A stretch of 64,000 nt of DNA from Cercozoa sp. M6MM (lineage: Eukaryota > Protista > Endomyxa: Ascetosporea): assembly GCA_040357565.1 (NCBI GenBank), contig JBDODJ010000012.1; one strand, given 5' to 3'. This document shows, piece by piece, positions 5,085 to 44,229 of the stretch (position 1 is its first letter; every line of letters begins with the position of its first letter). Below the pieces are notes generated by a model, which saw only the letters and a list, made by a program, of their open reading frames with translations, was not told the origin of the DNA and ran no database searches. The translations under genes and the position numbers were made by a program.

Positions 5085-5229
5085 AATGTACGATACGTAC
5101 CGTATTACATCCCGTCCGGCCGTACGGCAGTAGTACACTAGCGTAGTAATCGAATTATCGTCGCGCATCGCGTAAGACGAGAACCGAACGTCACGGCACC
5201 GTACGACTTTGGCGCGAATCCACGGCTGT

Positions 5230-8118
5230 TCACATCCCCGTGAGTTGTCGAATCTTCCGAATACTCTCACGCAGCTTGCGCTTCGCGGGTCCTTCTTCTG
5301 GCTCTGCTTCCTCTGTTCTGGTACGTGTTTCCGACACGCGCAATACTGCAAGGGCCTGTGAACAAGCAATAGACATGCACTTCAAACAGCGAGTGCATTG
5401 AAATCATACCGCTTCGCGATCGCGCTTAAAGTACAAGTCGCGTAGCTCGGAAAAGCGCAGATCGTCCTGTCACAAATCACACATAAGCCAGATAGTCACA
5501 AAAAGTGTGTCGATAAGAACAACGAACCTGACTGTTCGCTGCCATTCCCAGACGACGGATCTGCGGCAATCCAAGCATATTGATATCCACCACAAAAAAC
5601 ACACATGTACACAGGGTTCACACCAGTCGCACAAAGCGTGCATTGCACATGAGCGAGCTGCGCGACTTGCGGAGTTGCTCCACAAACGCAGTCAGTTGCA
5701 TCACCTTCACAACGTGAGCACAAATGACAGCACACAATGAAAGAAGAGCTGGCTGTACAAGCTTGCGGTCATGCGGAGCAAGCGCCGACACGAAACGGGC
5801 ATCGACAATGTGCGCACTTCATGTCCATCCATGCAAAAAGCACACAATGCATCCGTGCAATCCTGACTTACGTCCAGCGTCGTTGTGCTTGCATCTCGTC
5901 GACCAACAACGCAACCTGCCGCGGCGTGGCGCAGCTCTTCCCGAGTGCAGAAAAACGTCAATATAGGGTCATTGCACAGACACAGTTTTGAATAAACCAA
6001 GAAGCGAGCTGTCGACTGAAACGTGGCCTCAACTGCAGCAAGGGCAATGATGCACAGAACTTAATAAAAATGCAAAGTGCACCAATGGCATGTGGGCGTT
6101 GTGTGACCACGGTGGCACGTACGTCTTGTCCTTAATTTACACCAATGCAATCAGTGTAGCACCCTGAACACGTGATTCCTACGTTTTGTGCGTCCAAATG
6201 TGCGCGACAGATTCGCAGCCGTTTCCAACGCGTTCTGAGAGTGAGATCGCACACAGAATCGAAGGACACATGCCTGTGCTAGAATAACAAGGGATACCAA
6301 CAGATGCTTGTCCACCGCGTCATCACCGAGGAAGAGCAGATGTTTGGTCACGAGTGCCTGATGAATGGTAACCTCATCCGATCTCTGAGTCTTTCGCGGT
6401 CGTAAGTTGTACCTGCTGCAGTAGTACTGAGTGATCGCCACGCCGCACACCACCAAAGAACACTGCATAGAGTTCACACATATACATACGCATAAGAGCA
6501 AAAACTTGACGCAACACAATGAACTTACGAGCACGCGGATGCGCAGTGGTCCCGTTTAATTTAAACTGCACAACAATACCAGGCATACGAGGAAGACACT
6601 CAAACATCGAGGAAATAGTACGATGTGTCGCTTTCGTTGCGTCTCTTTCTCAGATGAATTCGATTCGGGCGGTGTTTCAAAGGGCGACCACACGTGCACG
6701 GGAACACCAACGCTGTGACATGCGCACTCGAAACTGTCGGCCACTCTACATGAACCTCAGGGATTACACGTATCCACAACAAAGAAAGCGCACGTGTGGT
6801 ACCGAAGGTCAAGGACATCAACGTGAGCAGGCGTGTTGCTCAGCAGGTTGTCGATCAAGGACAAACAACCGTCTCCTCGCAACCGTCGCAAAATTCGATG
6901 CATGGTTTCGTCTTTCGACTTTTGACGGAGCAGCACTAACACATGCATACGTACATATATATAGAATGATACATATGTGAAAATGGCGCGTACCAGGTGC
7001 GGTGCGTGTACTAAAGGTGTGAGTGACCACCTGGCCAGACCCGTATCTATGCTCGTGTTTCAACAGTACACGCGGTTGGTCGCTGGTCGAGCTCTCTAGG
7101 GGGAGATGAACAAACCAATGAAGAATGACACAAGCATACCGGAGCAAGGGATGAGCACCACTGTCAGTGTCGCAACGACGCTGCTGCTGCAGATCGGCGT
7201 GGATGGCAAAGTACGAGCGAAGCAGGTCCTGCCGCACCGAGCGCGGCGAGGCATCAAAGTCGCGCAATGCCGCCGCGTTGAGTCCAAGTGCCTGAGTGTG
7301 CGTGTGGAGTACCACACGTCGACACCTTTCACAGACAAGACACCGCATACCTCACGTGCAAGCGATGAAAGCGCTCGGTCCAGTTCGCCTGCAGCACAAG
7401 GGCTAGCATCGGAGAGCATATATGCACGTGCAGTCAGGTACCTCGTTCGCCCAGTGCCAGCGTCAGTTGTTCCTTCTCCATCTGACAAGAAGGGACATGT
7501 CATACAACATAACACTACAGGCAGACACATACCAGCATGGCGAGTGCCTCTGCATAGGACGAAAGATGCTGCGTCGCCGTGCCGACAGGCGGTACCTGGA
7601 AACCCAAAGTATGCATCTGGGGGTCAATCTTCAGATATACACTAGCTGTACCTGGTACTGTGAGTGTTCGTACTCTGGCGCGCCGTCATGAGTGGCCGCC
7701 TATACAAGTACACGAACCCGGTTAAAAACAGGTGCATTGCAACAGACAAAAAGTGGTACAGGTTCTCGTCTCGCCAGCTCAGCACGTGCGACCTGTGTAC
7801 AAAACATAGGGTAAATTGGCACACAAGCACACGCGCGCGCATCAGTACCTGCATGAAGGACAGTTGCTGAGGGTCGTGAGCGACCTATGGAAAACAAAGT
7901 CGGTATAAAACACAAGGTATAAAGGAATTAACGGAGTGAGATACTAGAACAACGTCGTAGCCGAACTGATGTGCTGCCTCGTGAGCCATTTTAACCAGGT
8001 GGCGGATCCTACATACGGTGGAATATCAACAACACAGAAACAACAAACCAGAGCGCATGCTACAATGTGCCACTGCTGTGTCGCAGTCCTGCCCACCCCT
8101 GGTGAACACACAAAGCAT

Positions 8119-8175
<57 letters not shown>

Positions 8176-9537
8176 AGATGTGTCAAAAACATGTACCGTG
8201 CCCAGGACAGGCAGGGCCACCAGCGGTCGCTCGCGTTGTAGCCGCCACTTCAGTCGTCTCTCCTGTCAGTGCACTCATAAGATAGATAAGATGATCGGTG
8301 CAGTCTCAGCGCACACAGAGAAAACGTACAGGACGGCGCAGGTCCAATGCGACCATGTGGAAGTACTGCCTGATTCCGTCGAGTGACTGTGTACACAAGC
8401 ACAAAACATATATACATACGTATATATACATATACGTATATGGCAGGATACAAGGAAGACAGCATCGACGTCGTTGCTGTGGCGCTCAATGCCGCGACAC
8501 GAGCGCGGGTAGGCCTCTTGATCAAGGTGCTGTACAGACACATGCATGTGTGTAACTAGAGGAGAACGACTTCTCACCTGGTGCCTGCGACGAGCCTGTG
8601 CGTCTCGTGCGTATCGAATGGTTTCCTGGTCCAGGTGCGTGTTGATCAGGTATAATGACGGCCAGTGGTCACGCCATGCGCTGCATCGGTTTCCCGTCAT
8701 CAGTCAGTTGATGCACAGCAGCCATCATTTAAAAAAACGCAGTATAGCATGGTACGGGTGCTCAAAGACACGTGCGACTCGTTTCGCGTGGTGCCAGCGC
8801 CGTTTGAAACACTGCTCAAGCACAGCGCAGCCCACAGGATCAAAAGCTTCACATCACACAAGTGGTACACAAGCGGTGGATATGAGAGCGCTACATCGTG
8901 CAGTTTGCACCAGCCACCGACGGATTCGAGAGCGTCCACGCGAGGTGCCACCTCCTGTAGAACAAGGGTAGTAACAAAGATACGAGGTATGCGAGTCGTA
9001 CATCTTGCAGGACAATGCCGCCTATGGACTCGGCCTGTGACAGTTGCATGGCATGTATGAGCACACAGAAGGTACGTGTATGGATACAGTAATTTACCAT
9101 CTCATCATGCAGCCAGTGAGTGGCGAGCAGGAACTTGACGCTCTTCCTGTCTTGCTGCAGGTGTTTCTCTGCCTGTCGGTTCGGTGTGATGGCACTGGGA
9201 TCTGTCTGTGTCTGTATCTGCGTCTGATCGGTGGCAGCGCCATCGTCGACAGCACCTGTGCCAATGTTGCGACGCTCGCGTCGTCGCTCTCGGCGCTGTT
9301 GCCGTCGCTCTCGTCGCTCTCGTCGCAACTGTCGCTTGCGTGACTCCTTGTTCAGTCCATGCCTCTTCTTGTGCTGCTTCTTGTTTGTCTTGTCCCTCTT
9401 GGTCTTCTTGTCCTTCTGGCGGCTGCGACGGCGCTGGTCTGTCTTGCCGCTCAACGAGTCACGCCTGTCGCGGAATCGTTTCTGGTGCATATATTTCGCC
9501 TTCTTGGCAGCACTCTGCATCTGCTCAGAGAGCACGT

Positions 9538-9579
<42 letters not shown>

Positions 9580-9679
9580 NNNNNNNNNNNNNNNNNNNNN
9601 NNNNNNNNNNNNNNNNNNNNNNNNNNNNNNNNNNNNNNNNNNNNNNNNNNNNNNNNNNNNNNNNNNNNNNNNNNNNNNN

Positions 9680-9722
<43 letters not shown>

Positions 9723-10946
9723 ATTGAACTGGAGTGTGCTGTACCGTGGCTTGGTGCATCACAGTCGCCGAGGCGCACCACTGCCAAGTACACCGGAAAT
9801 ACTCGGTCCACACGAGTGCAAGCAACAACACATACGGCATCGCAGTCGAGTCGACGAATGTCGCCTTGCACAATGAACACATGACCACCCGAGCCATGTC
9901 CGAAATGAGGCCACGACTCTTCTTCAACGATGTCACTCCAGCCCGAGTCGCTGCTGTGACTGCTGCTGCTGCCGCCGCTGCTGCTGCTGCTGTCACTACT
10001 GATTGACGAGTCACTGTCAGAGCCAGAGTCATCAAGCTGATTGTCTTGCTGCTGCTGCTGCTGCTGCTGCTGTTGTTGTTGCTGCTGTCGTTGTTGCTGC
10101 TGTCGTTGTTGCTGCTTCTGGTCGTTTGTGACGTCAGCCACGTTGTTGTTGTCGCCATCATCGTCGTCCTTACAACTGGCATCGTCAGTACCGGCGGCAG
10201 TGTCATTGTTTAGTGTGTTGAGCACCAGCGAACCTGTCGGTGTGCCTGAGGCAGAAGCAGCAATAGACGACTGATCACACTATTGCAAAAAAGGCTCTAC
10301 CCATGCAGTCCTTGGGCGCGGCGTGCATCGACTCCGGAACGGCTTCCGACAACACGTCGTACAAGGTCGACTAATGTCATAGAAAACCTAGAAATCACTC
10401 AGGAGAATACAAACATGGTACACTGCGCAGCTCTGCCGGCACAGAGGACAGGAAATCACCGAGTCTGCCCAACCAACAAGCAGAGGGTGTGAAACAAGAG
10501 CGAATATCTGCAGGTGACAAGAATGGACGCACCTCTCAAACAGTTCGGCGTCTTCGCGGTACAGTTCTACTTGCAGCAAGTCCTGCCAGAAAAACAAAAC
10601 AAAGCAAATGCGCAACCCGAGAAAATGCAGCAAAGAAGAGTGCACCAGGAAGCGTTCGAGCCAGTGTGCGCCATTGGCAAAATTCCACTGCTCCTCCGGC
10701 ATTGACACGATGCGTAATGCTATGCATACATACACAAGTGCATGGGCACACTTAGGTAGGGAAGTAATCACACAGAAAGTAGGGTACAGTGCTGCGAGTT
10801 GCGACTCCATTCGGCAGCTACAAACATCATATCCACACTGTACGACAGTGATACAGATACACCGCGAGGGAAAGGAACCCATGTCTTGTCCTTGTGCTTG
10901 TGTTAGTGCCAAGACTGTCGTGGTGTTCTTGGAACTGGACACACAC

Positions 10947-11000
<54 letters not shown>

Positions 11001-11010
11001 NNNNNNNNNN

Positions 11011-11061
<51 letters not shown>

Positions 11062-12983
11062 TACACACAAACCTGTCCATAATTATGTCGTGGGGGAGGA
11101 AGGATGGTGGCACCTACTCGTGCTGCTGTGCCGACGTGCAGCCGCCAGAAACTTGTGCCAGTTGTAATCTGCCGAATAAGTATAAACCAATACAAGCGTA
11201 TACCATAGACACACACAGACATGCCTACCACTGAGCGAGAAGCCGACCACGAAGACTTGTCTCGTAAGCAACAATGCCTGCCCGCGCCAGACAGACGGAG
11301 ACATAAAAAAGTGTGATACAGCGACAAAGACCAGTGTACCTGAATGGAGGCAGCAAGTGCGCGTCGCGGAGTGTAGTCGTAGTCCAGATAAGACGTGCGT
11401 GACAAGACAATGTCGGTGCCCTCTTGTTCCACAGAGCCATGTGCTTTGAGTAGCCAAGCCGGGTGTTCCTCCTTGGCTGTGTGATTAGGCAGACACAAAT
11501 TAAACTAAGGCCAATAGAGAGGCAGATGAGGGAATACTCTGCGACCGTTGCTTGCACTTGGGACGCACCAGGCGACCGTACGGCAGCACTGCCAGTGGCT
11601 CATCGCCACAGGATCGCACTGCTCGCTCGAAGAGGTCCTACCCACAAAGACTCAACTCAAGCCCATCACCCACATAAAACACAACCAAACACAGATGCAA
11701 CGTACATCGTAGTTAGTCGTGATGAACTCGCGTACAGGCAGTGCTGACAGCAGCGTGTGCTGTAGTGAGAACGTTCTGTGTCATTTACGCACACAACCCA
11801 GATAAAACACAAGCAAACGTCAAATATGCGAGGGCCTACTTCACTTCCTTCAGCAACGAGCTGACCAAGGCACGGACTTTCTTTGCTCCGTGCTCTCTAT
11901 TAAATACCAAAGTATATATGTTTATATACATTTATAACACACATAATCGCATCGGGAGGGCTAAACTACAATTCAAGCAGCTCGGCAGTGCGCAGAAAAT
12001 CCTTGCTCTGTGCAATTTGTTCCGGTGAGAGTTCCGGGTGCGTCGTCTCGGGCAACTGCTCGGCCAGACGCTGCAAAAGCTGGCCCCAAAGAGGCATGCC
12101 AGCACCGACTGTACAAAAATAAAACACGTGGCAGAGACACAAGGACTGACTGGAATCCGTATACCTGAAACACCGGCTCCGAAAAACACGGCCGCATCGC
12201 CACGTGCAATGTCGGACGCCATACGCCGGGCTTCCGCTTGCAGTACCTCCTCTATGAGTCACCAGTTGAGCAGAGACAAATCTCAAGATTTCAAATAGAG
12301 AGGCAGATACGCTGCTCAAAGTCGCAGAAAAGACGCAGTGCAGGCGCCAGCGCGGCACGTCGCGCACGCAGCAAGTTCCACAGACAGGGGTCCTGACATG
12401 GTAGCACAAATCTACTCGTGCACTCGCAGAGACAAACACATGCACACAAGAACTGTCATACAGAGGAAGTCAGGATCCAGTCAAAGTCAACAGTGACGAC
12501 ATCTTCCGAACCCGGCATGCCCTCCATTTCCTCGTCTAATTGCTCTTTCACACCGGTCTTTGACGTAATAAGTAAGAAAAGACGATACCTGCCAAAGAGG
12601 GCTGTACGCCACGACACAAAAACAACAGCAAACGGACGTCCTTGTCGGTCAAAGGTGGCTCCACAACTAACTACGAACAATGCACCGCATGCGTTTGTCC
12701 GGATGAATCAGTGAGGAATCGACACCTGGATGAGATGCAGTTTCCGGCGATTCTTCGGCGGCTCCACTTTCAATACTGCTCAGTATCAAGGTTGTAGGGA
12801 TCTAGCGCTCACACATACAGAATGTGGAAGGGTACTTTCGTTCAGGAGTGAAACTAGTTGTAGCTGTGTGGCACGGGGGTCGTCAGCATCATACAGCTCA
12901 CTCGCATACAACACATGGTCGCACGCCAGTAAACGCGGCTTCGCGCAGTAGGACGCAAAGATGTGCCCGCGCGACTGTCCCAT
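5230..12983 (-). CDS. Tandem-duplicated Macro-like/SIR2-like (SIR2_2-type) protein: pseudo-Macro, SIR2, linker, Macro, pseudo-SIR2; about 30 introns
   Basis: SIR2 copy 1: AVFFGAGVS (~12170), GMPLWGQLL, HTLLSALPVREFITTNYD (~11710), WLLKAHGS..DIVLSR (~11440), ALLLTRQVFVVGFSLS (~11240), HWLERFL|DLL. Macro-like unit: GHVFIVQGDIRRLDCDA|W (~9860), RERPLVALPVLGT|GGAG (~8210), FGYDVVL|VAHD. SIR2 copy 2: LTLALGER, VVTHTFS, IFKLNG, ALVTKHLLFLGDD. The N-terminus MGQSRGHIFASYCAKPRLLACDH starts at ATG 12983 and the stop TGA is at 5230-5232. Confidence 0.8.
8124..8168. repeat. (GA)n microsatellite, intronic
   Basis: Direct observation. It lies in the intron between ...VLGT and GGAG... of the Macro-SIR2 gene. 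Confidence 0.95.
9539..9720. repeat. (CA)n microsatellite spanning an assembly gap, intronic
   Basis: CA runs flank 100 N. Similar CA/GT tracts occur at 1-60, 10952-11066, 44230-44280, 48090-48350, 51650-51780 and 57990-58097. Confidence 0.95.
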
Positions 12984-13248
12984 TCGGAAGCCGTTTGTTT
13001 GATACGCCTTCAGCTTTCCTTCCAAGAACAGATAATTCTCGAACAATCTCTCAATAACTTACACTAAGAGCACTAAGATCACACAGCCACACAATGTTTC
13101 ACAGCATAAACAATGCTGGAAACAGAAAAGGTGGGTACAGGCATACTGTATCGACTCAGCGCCTTCGGCTCACGAAAATGAAAATTCATCATTATCGCAA
13201 GGCAAACGCGTGTTGAAAGGGTGTGAAGGTGTGAACACAGTGCTTGCG

Positions 13249-14910
<1,662 letters not shown>

Positions 14911-41700: not shown

Positions 41701-44229
41701 TGCGCTTGCTGCGCAAGTTCTTGCCTTCAATAGAAGTCTACTTTAGCACATTCCTGTCGGTACAGCAGTCCTTTTGTGATCACAGAAGACCAGAATTTAA
41801 CCTCTTTACCGAGCAAAAACCGACGGACGGTTGTGTTTTTAAAGGAGGCGCGTCAGAAGCAGGAAGACGAAGTGAAACTGCAAAAGTTCTATGCCGAGTT
41901 CAAGGAGGCCGTTGTGCTGGGTACGCGCGCTGTTTCACTTTATGTAGTCTCTCTCTGTCTCACCCTGTCATTGTGTTTTTTTGTTGGTTGCACAGATGAG
42001 TTGCCGCCGCCTGCGCCGAACGCGCCGCTGCCTGTGCCGCCGAACTGCAGGTGCATTGTGCAGCTTTACCCCTCTCCCGCCCCGTACTCTTGTATGCAGT
42101 ATGTCGGACGAGGAGGAGTCGTTGAGCAATGCGATTGAGTACGACGACGCCAGTGACATTGACATGGAGGAGCACTCGGCGCCCGCGCGGATGCCCGCTC
42201 GGATGACGGGCGAGCGCCGGCACCGGCGTCTGCAGAGTGCGGCTCGTCCGCGAAAGCTGCGAGAGCGGCGGCACTTGCGTCAGTCGACATCGGGTATCTT
42301 TACCACCCTTACTCCCCCCCTCCCAGGGTATACCGTGTGTGCTGCAGGAGTGCCGATGTTGGGACTGACGGACCTCGTGCCGCCTGCAGCGTCAATCGAC
42401 ATGGTAGTTACCCTACACTTTACCCCCCCCCCACACACACACACACCCCTTTCCTTACGCCTAACCACATTTACCCTCACACAGACGGAGCTGTCCGAAA
42501 AGGAAGCGTTGAGTCGAGAGACCGGACTGATCGGAGGAGTGTCGGACGGTGTCGCAGCTAATGCCACCGACACGGTTGTTGCCACCGTCGATGATGTCGC
42601 TGATACCGACCGTGCCACCGATGATACCGACGGTGACGGTGCGACTCCGCGCGATCACGCACCGCCCGGACTGGCCGAGGCCATTGCCGCTCGCGACCTC
42701 AAGGCTGTCGAACGCATCATGCGCTCCGTGCGGCGTGCGCGGCGCAGCTCGGTACTCCCTTTGAGACAGCAATATCGGTATCTTTTGTTGTGTTCCCGCG
42801 GGTATACCCCTCTCGTCGCGTAGGACGGTGTGGATCAGTACAAGAACAGCCGCCTCGTCAAAATTGGCGATGCGCTGCTGCAGCAGCTCCGCGCGGAACA
42901 CGTCGTTCTGCTGGAGCTTCGTCGCGCCGTCACCGTGCTTTACCCCCTACCTCTAGCCATTTACCCCCACCCCTTTACCCCCTCTTATCCCCTAATCCAC
43001 GCACTCCTTTACCCCCCTCGTCCACAGGAACTGGACCGTCCGGAGATAGTGCACTGGTTAGAACGAGCGGCAGAGATGGGCCTCGATGCCGATCTCAACT
43101 CGGGCAGTACCTGCGAGGCTTCTGGTAGCCCCTCCCCCGCCCTTTACCCTCCCTCTTACCCCCCCCCCCCCCCGTAGAAAGTAGCGGTAGTGGGAGCAGC
43201 AAGAGGCGCAAGAAGCGTCGGCAGAAGGGCACGTCGCCGGCACCGTCGCCCAAGGCACAGGCCTCGGACGTCAAGCTGCTGCGACTGGCACGCAAGCTGG
43301 CCTACGGCATGTCGGCCTCGGAGTTCCACGACCGGCGCATCGAGGCCGTGCTTAAGGTGCGCATGGCTGTTTTCCCCGTTCCCCTTTACCCCCTTGCCCC
43401 TATCCCCACGTCGCGTAGGACGAGGACCTTGAGTCGTTGGAACTGCTGCTGACCAAGGCGCATCTCAAGGTGCCTCTTGTACCCACCCACTGTACCTCCT
43501 TACCCCCCCCCCCCCCACATACGCACAGTCGTGGGAGTCGCCGACGGTGGAGCGCGCGCGGCAGCGACTGTACGAGAAACGCATGGCGCAGCAGCAGAGT
43601 GCTGTGCCACTGGCCGCCGTCTGTCTGTCCGAGGACCTCGGCACTGGCGGCAGTCTCGGCAGCATTGGTTTACCCCCCCCCCCCCCCCCCTTTTATTTCC
43701 CCACACCCTCTTTTACCCTCCTTTCCCCTATGTGTAGGCAACAGTCTGAGCAGTATCGACTTGGGTCCGACACGTCGATTGAGTGCGTGTTCCTCGGCCA
43801 CGTCGTCATTGGGGAGCGACACCAATGCATTCGGTACTGTGCGTTACCCCTCCCCTTCTGCTGCCTCCCCTTTACTCCCTCCCTCCCCCTCCCAGGTGGA
43901 AGCCTGAGCGTTCTGGGAACAGAGTCGGACGCCGGAAAGTCAAGTGCTGACCCAAGGTACCTACCTCACTTGCACTTATCCCCCTTACCCCTCACTCCCT
44001 ATACCCCCCCCCCCCCCCGACAGATGGCACCGCAGCAGTGCGCCGTACGTCGATGCCAGCACGATTCGTCGCTGGAACTTTTCGAGTCTGTTCGCGTCCT
44101 TCAAAGGGCGGTACACCGCCTTCACCCGGNNNNNNNNNNNNNNNNNNNNNNNNNNNNNNNNNNNNNNNNNNNNNNNNNNNNNNNNNNNNNNNNNNNNNNN
44201 NNNNNNNNNNNNNNNNNNNNNNNNNNNNN

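Follow-up and report, generated by a model that had tools for sequence, protein, structure and literature searches.

Two tandem Macro–SIR2 units with apparent reciprocal degeneration in a cercozoan gene

A 64,000-nucleotide (nt) stretch of the unannotated genome of the protist Cercozoa sp. M6MM (Endomyxa: Ascetosporea; GenBank assembly GCA_040357565.1, contig JBDODJ010000012.1), hereafter the window, contains a short-intron eukaryotic gene that runs along the minus strand from an ATG at 12983 and matches a bacterial family of macrodomain plus SIR2_2 proteins (Macro+SIR2_2) twice, in order. Sequence comparison supports two tandem Macro+SIR2 units that have degenerated reciprocally, with unit 1 keeping its SIR2 domain (SIR2-1) and unit 2 keeping the signature motifs of its macrodomain (Macro-2). 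A preliminary description of the window, made from its letters alone, had proposed this arrangement, and it is largely borne out by two colinear family matches in which SIR2-1 scores 211 bits and Macro-2 72 bits. We consider it about evenly balanced whether the locus is, as we propose, one nuclear gene derived from a bacterial Macro+SIR2_2 ancestor, built of tandem units with decayed halves, in which SIR2-1 is a putative NADase (NAD, nicotinamide adenine dinucleotide) controlled by Macro-2.

Two colinear family matches in a short-intron gene

Exon-by-exon searches with Pfam and PADLOC were nearly blind at this locus, returning one sub-threshold SIR2_2 match (11230-11504; E 8e-4, with 19.9 bits in a single unspliced exon, below the cut-off of 24.5) and one weak ThsA match in the exon that carries TTNYD. 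A Protein Data Bank (PDB) search with a single exon gave chance matches only. A six-frame search of the 23.6-Mb assembly with PF13289 found no match although the domain is present, so an exon-wise search that comes back empty in this genome means little. The single informative match of the TTNYD exon in a search of 1.84 billion representative proteins was P0002, a metagenomic protein of 544 amino acids (aa). The one other match, P0001 (1098 aa, with ~90-aa tandem repeats), ranked first in the exon search but had aligned only to intron-derived query residues 47-65 and was rejected as chance.

When P0002 (tblastn) and a hidden Markov model (HMM) of 117 family sequences were run against all 2430 six-frame open reading frame (ORF) segments of the window, all significant matches were on the minus strand within 12255-6300, where they formed two colinear series, and the ten segments scoring best with the HMM all belonged to the Macro–SIR2 locus. 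The region is eukaryotic nuclear DNA by type, with short coding segments on the minus strand; its plus-strand ORFs gave no Pfam match, and the family profile found no further Macro+SIR2_2 locus elsewhere in the assembly.

Exons were placed with a purpose-written spliced profile-to-genome aligner, for which 12-24 control regions of the window and the reversed profile served as calibration, and the joined (spliced) models were scored against a local HMM built from bacterial homologues. A low intron penalty (5 bits, any GT..AG) overfits, and the splice path that resulted was set aside. The 25 modelled introns are uniform, with 22 GTA and 3 GTG donors, CAG or TAG acceptors in 24 of the 25 and lengths of 51-98 nt in 22. 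This uniform intron style (5200-13000, minus strand) could also serve gene-model building for the genome at large. The similarity to Macro and SIR2 that the preliminary description had expected of each quarter of the protein was recovered above controls for SIR2-1, Macro-2 and a remnant of the second SIR2 domain (SIR2-2), and failed to appear for the macrodomain region of copy 1 past its N-terminal trace.

Copy 1 keeps an apparently complete SIR2 domain

SIR2-1 spans eight exons (11131..12255, minus strand), placed by spliced profile alignment at 12255-12165, 12108-11970, 11896-11840, 11775-11706 (TTNYD), 11637-11569, 11471-11340 (KAHGS), 11277-11229 (GFSLS) and 11168-11131. The alignment scored 158 bits against 14.9 ± 1.9 in controls, and the joined model reached its 211 bits over profile positions 190-398, with 40-46% identity to bacterial members. 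All family-invariant residues are kept (GAGVS/GAGMP, TTNYD, E318, P332, W342, KxHG and GFSLSD). The Rossmann motif GAGxS is present as FFGAGVS, followed by GAGMPLW, and ITTNYD and KAHGS align with the family-invariant N312 and H347/G348; the four signatures listed in the preliminary description, FFGAGVS, TTNYD, KAHGS and GFSLS, are all in the spliced model. The joined peptide holds a single Cys and so has no Zn-binding Cys tetrad (criterion from bioRxiv 10.1101/2024.09.18.613514). Judged by these residues, SIR2-1 is complete and apparently catalytic. Its C-terminal helices follow at 10301..10696 (minus strand; exons 10696-10646, 10582-10533, 10464-10422 and 10370-10301), scoring 17.1 bits against 12.9 ± 1.3 in controls (z 3.3; profile positions 442-501, E 0.0018 with Z=1). 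Profile positions 397-441 were not located, near an assembly gap at 11001-11010.

The macrodomain of copy 1 is represented at its very start. Exon 1 (12834..12983, minus strand), with an in-frame stop upstream at 13061-13059, carries the first ATG (12983-12981) and, starting four residues after it, GHIF...RLLACD, which corresponds to profile positions 2-23 and resembles the family start MxGHVF...RLACDA, with the QGD motif replaced. Across the 128,000 translated positions of the window there are just two occurrences of GH[IV]F, at the starts of the two copies, and the fuller pattern GH[IV]F..RL..CD, expected 1.3e-4 times in the window, was found solely at the same two places. This segment is, on present alignments, the only solid trace of the first macrodomain: family profile positions 1-190 score 12.6 bits in copy 1 against 15.3 ± 2.4 in controls (z -1.1). 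The stretch between exon 1 and SIR2-1 (12256..12833, minus strand) allows several canonical in-frame splice paths, such as a direct 580-nt intron or small exons at ~12535-12462 and 12392-12301, and carries no homology signal. Of the short and degenerate macrodomain described earlier for copy 1, the N-terminal trace therefore stands and the remainder lacks statistical support.

Copy 2 keeps macrodomain motifs beside a degenerate SIR2 domain

Macro-2 opens with N-terminal strands at 9827..9886 (minus strand; GHVFIVQGD..LDCDA, profile positions 2-22, E 2e-4), which are 76% identical to P0002 by tblastn (9886-9827). Downstream, a long, basic, K/R/E-rich open stretch (9098..9545, minus strand) is a candidate low-complexity insertion exon for the variable loop of Macro-2. 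The C-terminal two-thirds of the domain (7760..8954, minus strand) comprises a tentative exon at 8954-8895 and exons 8386-8330, 8262-8197 (ALPVLGT), 8098-8064 (GWAG loop), 8008-7945, 7884-7849 and 7792-7760. Its spliced profile alignment scored 71.7 bits, against 15.9 ± 1.5 in controls, and the joined model 72-74 bits over profile positions 92-213; this alignment extends into the first SIR2 strand, in which GER stands in place of GAG. In family numbering, R120, L124, P128, G131, G136, G142, D162, Q177 and R180 are kept, as are the GD motif and the glycine loop, spliced as ALPVLGT/GWAG. Both motifs had been recognized in the preliminary description, which read the loop as GTGGAG; spliced, it is GTGWAG.

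From Macro-2 the chain runs unbroken into SIR2-2 in a 15-exon model (8954-6298) that is in frame, with GTA at every donor and CAG or TAG at every acceptor. The degenerate SIR2-2 (6298..7595, minus strand) is modelled in exons 7595-7533, 7481-7442 (LTLALGER), 7388-7351, 7291-7140, 6745-6622, 6565-6529 (FKLNG), 6462-6413 and 6357-6298 (LFLGDD). Its clearest remnant, LVTKHLLFLG(DD), scored 24.2 bits against 17.3 ± 1.9 in controls (z 3.6), and profile positions 329-380 gave an E value of 3.7e-4 in the joined chain. Relative to the family, GAG has changed to GER (LALGER), the VSxGAGLP NAD loop is deleted, HG has changed to NG (FKLNG) and GFS to GDD, and the Asn-bearing strand is absent from the modelled chain. 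GER, NG and GDD agree with the motif changes listed earlier; the fourth, THTFS (7024-7010), drops out, lying in a 394-nt intron of the model. A possible remnant of the C-terminal helices (5621..5816, minus strand; profile positions 469-514, E 3.3) ends at a TGA (5620-5618) that is a possible protein end. A further stop, at 7703-7701, is reachable if the donor at 7759 is unused.

An in-frame join between the copies

The two units are connected by exons 10696-10646, 10582-10533, 10464-10422, 10370-10301 and 10245-9827, which stay in frame through introns of 63, 68, 51 and 55 nt, in agreement with the in-frame join proposed earlier. The last of these exons holds both the start of Macro-2 and, ahead of it, an acidic, D/N/Q/S-rich low-complexity linker (9887..10245, minus strand). 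This linker and the basic stretch at 9098-9545, one on either side of the Macro-2 start, are low-complexity inserts of a typical kind. Upstream of GHVFIVQGD, the stop-free stretch 10279-9887 covers 131 codons with no ATG, and a separate second gene would consequently need an exon inside the first. Reading frame and splice sites make a single translated chain likely, longer than 1000 residues and with the low-complexity linker between the two units. Retention of the last (55-nt) intron would place the protein end at a stop at 10280-10278.

Two assembly gaps interrupt the locus, at 9580-9679 in the predicted intron after exon 9886-9827 and at 11001-11010 in the predicted intron after exon 11168-11131. 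Because both fall in modelled introns, the protein frame is independent of them. Each lies in a (TG)n microsatellite and is bordered on both sides by the same repeat (coding strand), which suggests that only repeat length is unresolved there; it is possible that the gaps hide a small exon, near profile positions 397-441 and 20-95. Long ORFs that read through the gaps (for example 10279-8894) are artefacts in which N is translated as X. Microsatellites of (TG)n and (CT)n lie inside introns at 9540-9722, 10952-11060 and 8110-8175, and other gaps of the window (for example at 44130, 48147 and 58039) are also within (TG)n runs, so the gaps of the window are mostly unresolved repeat length.

A widespread bacterial family with a divergent macrodomain

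Full-length relatives of P0002, at 510-550 aa, number more than 500, and 260 family loci were found in GTDB species-representative genomes from Myxococcota, Planctomycetota, Actinomycetota, Chloroflexota and other phyla. The bacterial genes encode ~530 aa, are intronless and occur in one copy per locus; a neighbouring ESM Atlas cluster is automatically named 'Macro/SIR2-like domain-containing protein'. Pfam sees only SIR2_2 in family members (best E 2.7e-31), and Pfam Macro (PF01661) matched 0 of 59 of them and gave no six-frame match at the protist locus. In an AlphaFold (AF2) model of P0002 computed from 117 relatives (pLDDT 94), residues 1-195 are predicted to form a macrodomain fold (5fud, Z 15.5 over 169 residues; also PARP14, PARP9, Af1521, macroH2A and MACROD1/2) and residues 200-536 a ThsA-type SIR2 fold (7uxt, Z 23.1; KomC, Z 21.7; FAM118B, 9r0p, Z 15.0). 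In the same model the macrodomain packs against the SIR2 domain. The earlier assignment of the N-terminal domain to the macrodomains is upheld, for the bacterial homologue, by this predicted structure, and to judge from the profiles the domain is a divergent macro lineage.

A PDB profile search with the family ranked ThsA first (6lhx, 1.7e-30), with DSR2 at 1e-24 and macroH2A1.1 at 1.8e-4, and canonical sirtuins scored far below ThsA and DSR2; PADLOC matched the family to the ThsA SIR2 at ~1e-29 to 1e-34. Since fold, profile and PADLOC results agree, the Macro+SIR2 unit proposed in the preliminary description corresponds to a real and widespread bacterial architecture. Units of the protist gene share its order, an N-terminal macrodomain followed by a ThsA-type SIR2 and C-terminal helices, as set out for P0002-P0121. 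They also share the motifs GHVF..GD..CDA, LPLVGTG.GG, GAGVS, TTNYD, HG and GFS, SIR2-1 being 40-46% and Macro-2 30-40% identical to bacterial members. The protist gene differs in consisting of two half-decayed tandem units, in its more than 25 introns and in its low-complexity inserts.

Among 80 bacterial neighbourhoods, 17, mostly myxobacterial, contain a 1300-aa STAND-like protein that combines a Ser/Thr kinase with AAA_16 (STK-AAA_16; for example L035:2048-6001, plus strand). Its gene lies directly upstream of the Macro–SIR2 gene with a 4-nt overlap with the start of the latter, and may be a lineage-specific partner. In six of the 80, the Macro–SIR2 gene adjoins an NrtR-type regulator of NAD metabolism (Nudix plus winged-helix; for example L090:8689-9525, minus strand), a placement that hints at a tie to NAD/ADP-ribose (ADPR) homeostasis rather than defence in some lineages. 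Elsewhere in the protist assembly there are four canonical Pfam Macro matches unrelated to the Macro–SIR2 locus (C191:4759-5034, C2:168415-168813, C411:8864-9022 and C57:46063-46443), and by these matches the genome also encodes ordinary macrodomain proteins. On the plus strand at 13446-14492, an intron-split KRR1 gene (KH_KRR1_1st and KH_KRR1_2nd) stands head-to-head with the Macro–SIR2 gene, the two ATGs ~460 bp apart.

Intron positions shared by the two copies

A phase-0 intron falls between profile positions 367 and 368 in both copies (..SIQ/ALLL.. in copy 1, ..LQQ/ALVT.. in copy 2), and a phase-1 intron directly follows GAG in copy 1 and GER in copy 2. These common positions suggest that the duplication took place after intron gain, inside the eukaryotic lineage; with so few comparable intron positions, coincidence has a probability of a few percent. 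On this evidence a bacterial Macro+SIR2_2 gene with a ThsA-type SIR2 would first have gained spliceosomal introns and later undergone an internal tandem duplication.

Function and alternative explanations

SIR2-1 groups with the NAD-hydrolysing ThsA, KomC and DSR2 and lacks the sirtuin Cys tetrad, which makes NAD+ cleavage its most likely chemistry. In the mechanism that we propose, SIR2-1 would cleave NAD+, and Macro-2 would control SIR2-1 by binding an ADPR-type ligand, be it a signal or the product ADPR itself. Macrodomains of type II Thoeris sense histidine-ADPR (His-ADPR)/IAD (PMC11204291), and this makes ligand control a reasonable model. Ligand gating and an immune role are, for the protist protein, what we infer by analogy. 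The two decayed domains may have been kept for a structural role, as partners in an intramolecular asymmetric pair comparable to FAM118A/FAM118B. The step from a homodimer to a covalent pseudo-dimer that the preliminary description proposed stays a conjecture. A stronger version holds that the single polypeptide is an obligate asymmetric pseudo-dimer in which Macro-2 reads an ADPR-type ligand and switches SIR2-1 through the pseudo-domains. The protein would then be a covalent counterpart of the FAM118A/B-type heteromer, and would show a horizontally acquired immune module caught midway in a permutation of its domain order by duplication; we regard this version as possible, though doubtful.

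Several observations weigh against the proposal of one gene with a macrodomain-controlled NADase. Profile positions 20-95 of Macro-2, the least conserved part of the family, were not found (z 0 for the middle part), so that the sensor may lack this part, or the gap may conceal some of it. The exons of SIR2-2 past 7351 were chosen partly by eye, and the choice between 7140 and 6745 is insecure. Direct comparison of the two copies, one of the checks named in the preliminary description, gave no significant similarity, either by BLASTP between ORF segments or with a BLOSUM profile (z 0). No partner gene is common to the 80 bacterial neighbourhoods, which leaves the ligand and its source without a pointer, and the exon-wise search of the incomplete 23.6-Mb assembly, low in sensitivity, gave no TIR, TIR_2 or ThsB_TIR match that could represent a producer of a TIR signal.

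The strong conservation of only the inner two domains could also be expected if duplication had permuted the domains. The working protein would then be in effect SIR2-linker-Macro, the reverse of the bacterial order, with the outer pseudo-Macro and pseudo-SIR2 as inert remains that are being lost, translated or not, and no functional pseudo-dimer. The large deletions in the pseudo-SIR2 (NAD loop and Asn strand), a pseudo-Macro undetectable past ~23 residues and the availability of the stop at 7703-7701 all fit such a protein. Yet all eight exons of the pseudo-SIR2 are still open in frame and bounded by canonical splice sites, which is unexpected under free decay, and C-terminal helices are still traceable at 5816-5621; we think this explanation fairly unlikely. 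A role in NAD/ADPR housekeeping or protein modification, with SIR2-1 as a deacylase or ADP-ribosyltransferase and Macro-2 removing or reading ADPR or O-acyl-ADPR as in SirTM–macrodomain pairs, would suit the presence of the macrodomain-fused SirTM (8rsn) among the structural matches, the ADPR-sensing NrtR neighbours, the failure to find a defence-type partner in the 80 bacterial loci and the head-to-head arrangement with the housekeeping gene KRR1. The closeness of the SIR2 domain to the NADase group (ThsA at E 1e-30, KomC, DSR2), its single Cys in place of a Zn tetrad and the far lower scores of canonical sirtuins speak for an NADase and make this role, in our judgement, quite improbable.

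The units might also form two adjacent genes. If the last, 55-nt intron is retained, gene 1 (pseudo-Macro and SIR2) ends at 10280-10278, and gene 2 (Macro and pseudo-SIR2) could have its own start, an ATG being present in exon 10370-10301. The products might then form a heteromer like FAM118A/B, and pairs of SIR2_2 paralogues do co-operate (PMC12700824). There is, however, no promoter room for gene 2, the 131 codons ahead of Macro-2 offer no ATG, and in form (GTA..CAG) and in size (55 nt) the joining intron is like the other introns, so that two adjacent genes are decidedly improbable. That the locus is dead, decaying or an assembly artefact might be suggested by its two gaps and by the degeneration of half of its domains. 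The gaps are both embedded in microsatellites, the divergence between the copies is far too great for an assembly duplication, and SIR2-1 retains every invariant residue in eight clean exons at 40-46% identity to bacterial proteins; we would be very surprised if this explanation held.

Discussion

The combination of Macro and SIR2 in a eukaryote is not new, and the claim of an undescribed eukaryotic protein made in the preliminary description is too strong. Fusions of eukaryotic SIR2_2 ('SIRim') with Macro, of ThsA-like bacterial ancestry, have been published as clade C, spanning 83 species, and taxa that bear SIRim include alveolates (bioRxiv 10.1101/2024.09.18.613514); the FAM118 paper, too, shows a SIR2_2 tree with a Macro label (PMC12700824). 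The protist gene shares with clade C its SIRim and Macro architecture and its ThsA-like affinity, a likeness drawn from these two features. The clade C paper makes no mention of tandem duplication or pseudo-domains, the word 'tandem' being absent from its text (bioRxiv 10.1101/2024.09.18.613514). For an internal tandem duplication with reciprocal decay we found no report in the literature, and this feature looks new.

The SIR2 domain has its closest solved relative in ThsA of Thoeris (7uxt, Z 23.1; 6lhx, E 1.7e-30), which occurs as SIR2-SLOG in type I and as a transmembrane (TM)-Macro protein in type II. The logic would be alike, with a nucleotide-sensing domain controlling an effector. Unlike Thoeris ThsA, the protist protein is eukaryotic, is encoded with introns and has neither SLOG nor a TM domain, and neither the bacterial neighbourhoods nor, in a search of low sensitivity, the assembly yielded a ThsB/TIR partner. 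Human FAM118A and FAM118B (SIRanc; 9r0p, Z 15.0) are eukaryotic SIR2_2 NAD-processing proteins, weak alone and active together, and set a precedent for asymmetric SIR2_2 pairs (PMC12700824). They differ from the protist protein in belonging to a vertebrate clade, lacking a macrodomain, coming from two separate genes and assembling into filaments. SirTM–macrodomain systems such as Fusarium Mfs1 (8rsn) likewise fuse a macrodomain to an enzyme of sirtuin fold; SirTMs are protein ADP-ribosyltransferases of another sirtuin class, and the protist SIR2 is related by sequence to SIR2_2 and not to SirTM.

Antiphage systems of bacteria and the innate immunity of eukaryotes share SIR2_2 NADases, whose activation in eukaryotes is still poorly understood. 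If the locus proved to be two genes, or its product truncated, it would be an ordinary pair of diverged paralogues. As one gene, its tandem form would amount to a built-in separation of sensor and catalyst, in which one half can mutate without touching the other, and would offer a natural test of two ideas about Macro–SIR2 proteins, their gating by a ligand and their action in asymmetric pairs. The gene would, moreover, cleanly exemplify how a defence-type gene of bacteria was intronized, duplicated and subfunctionalized in a protist.

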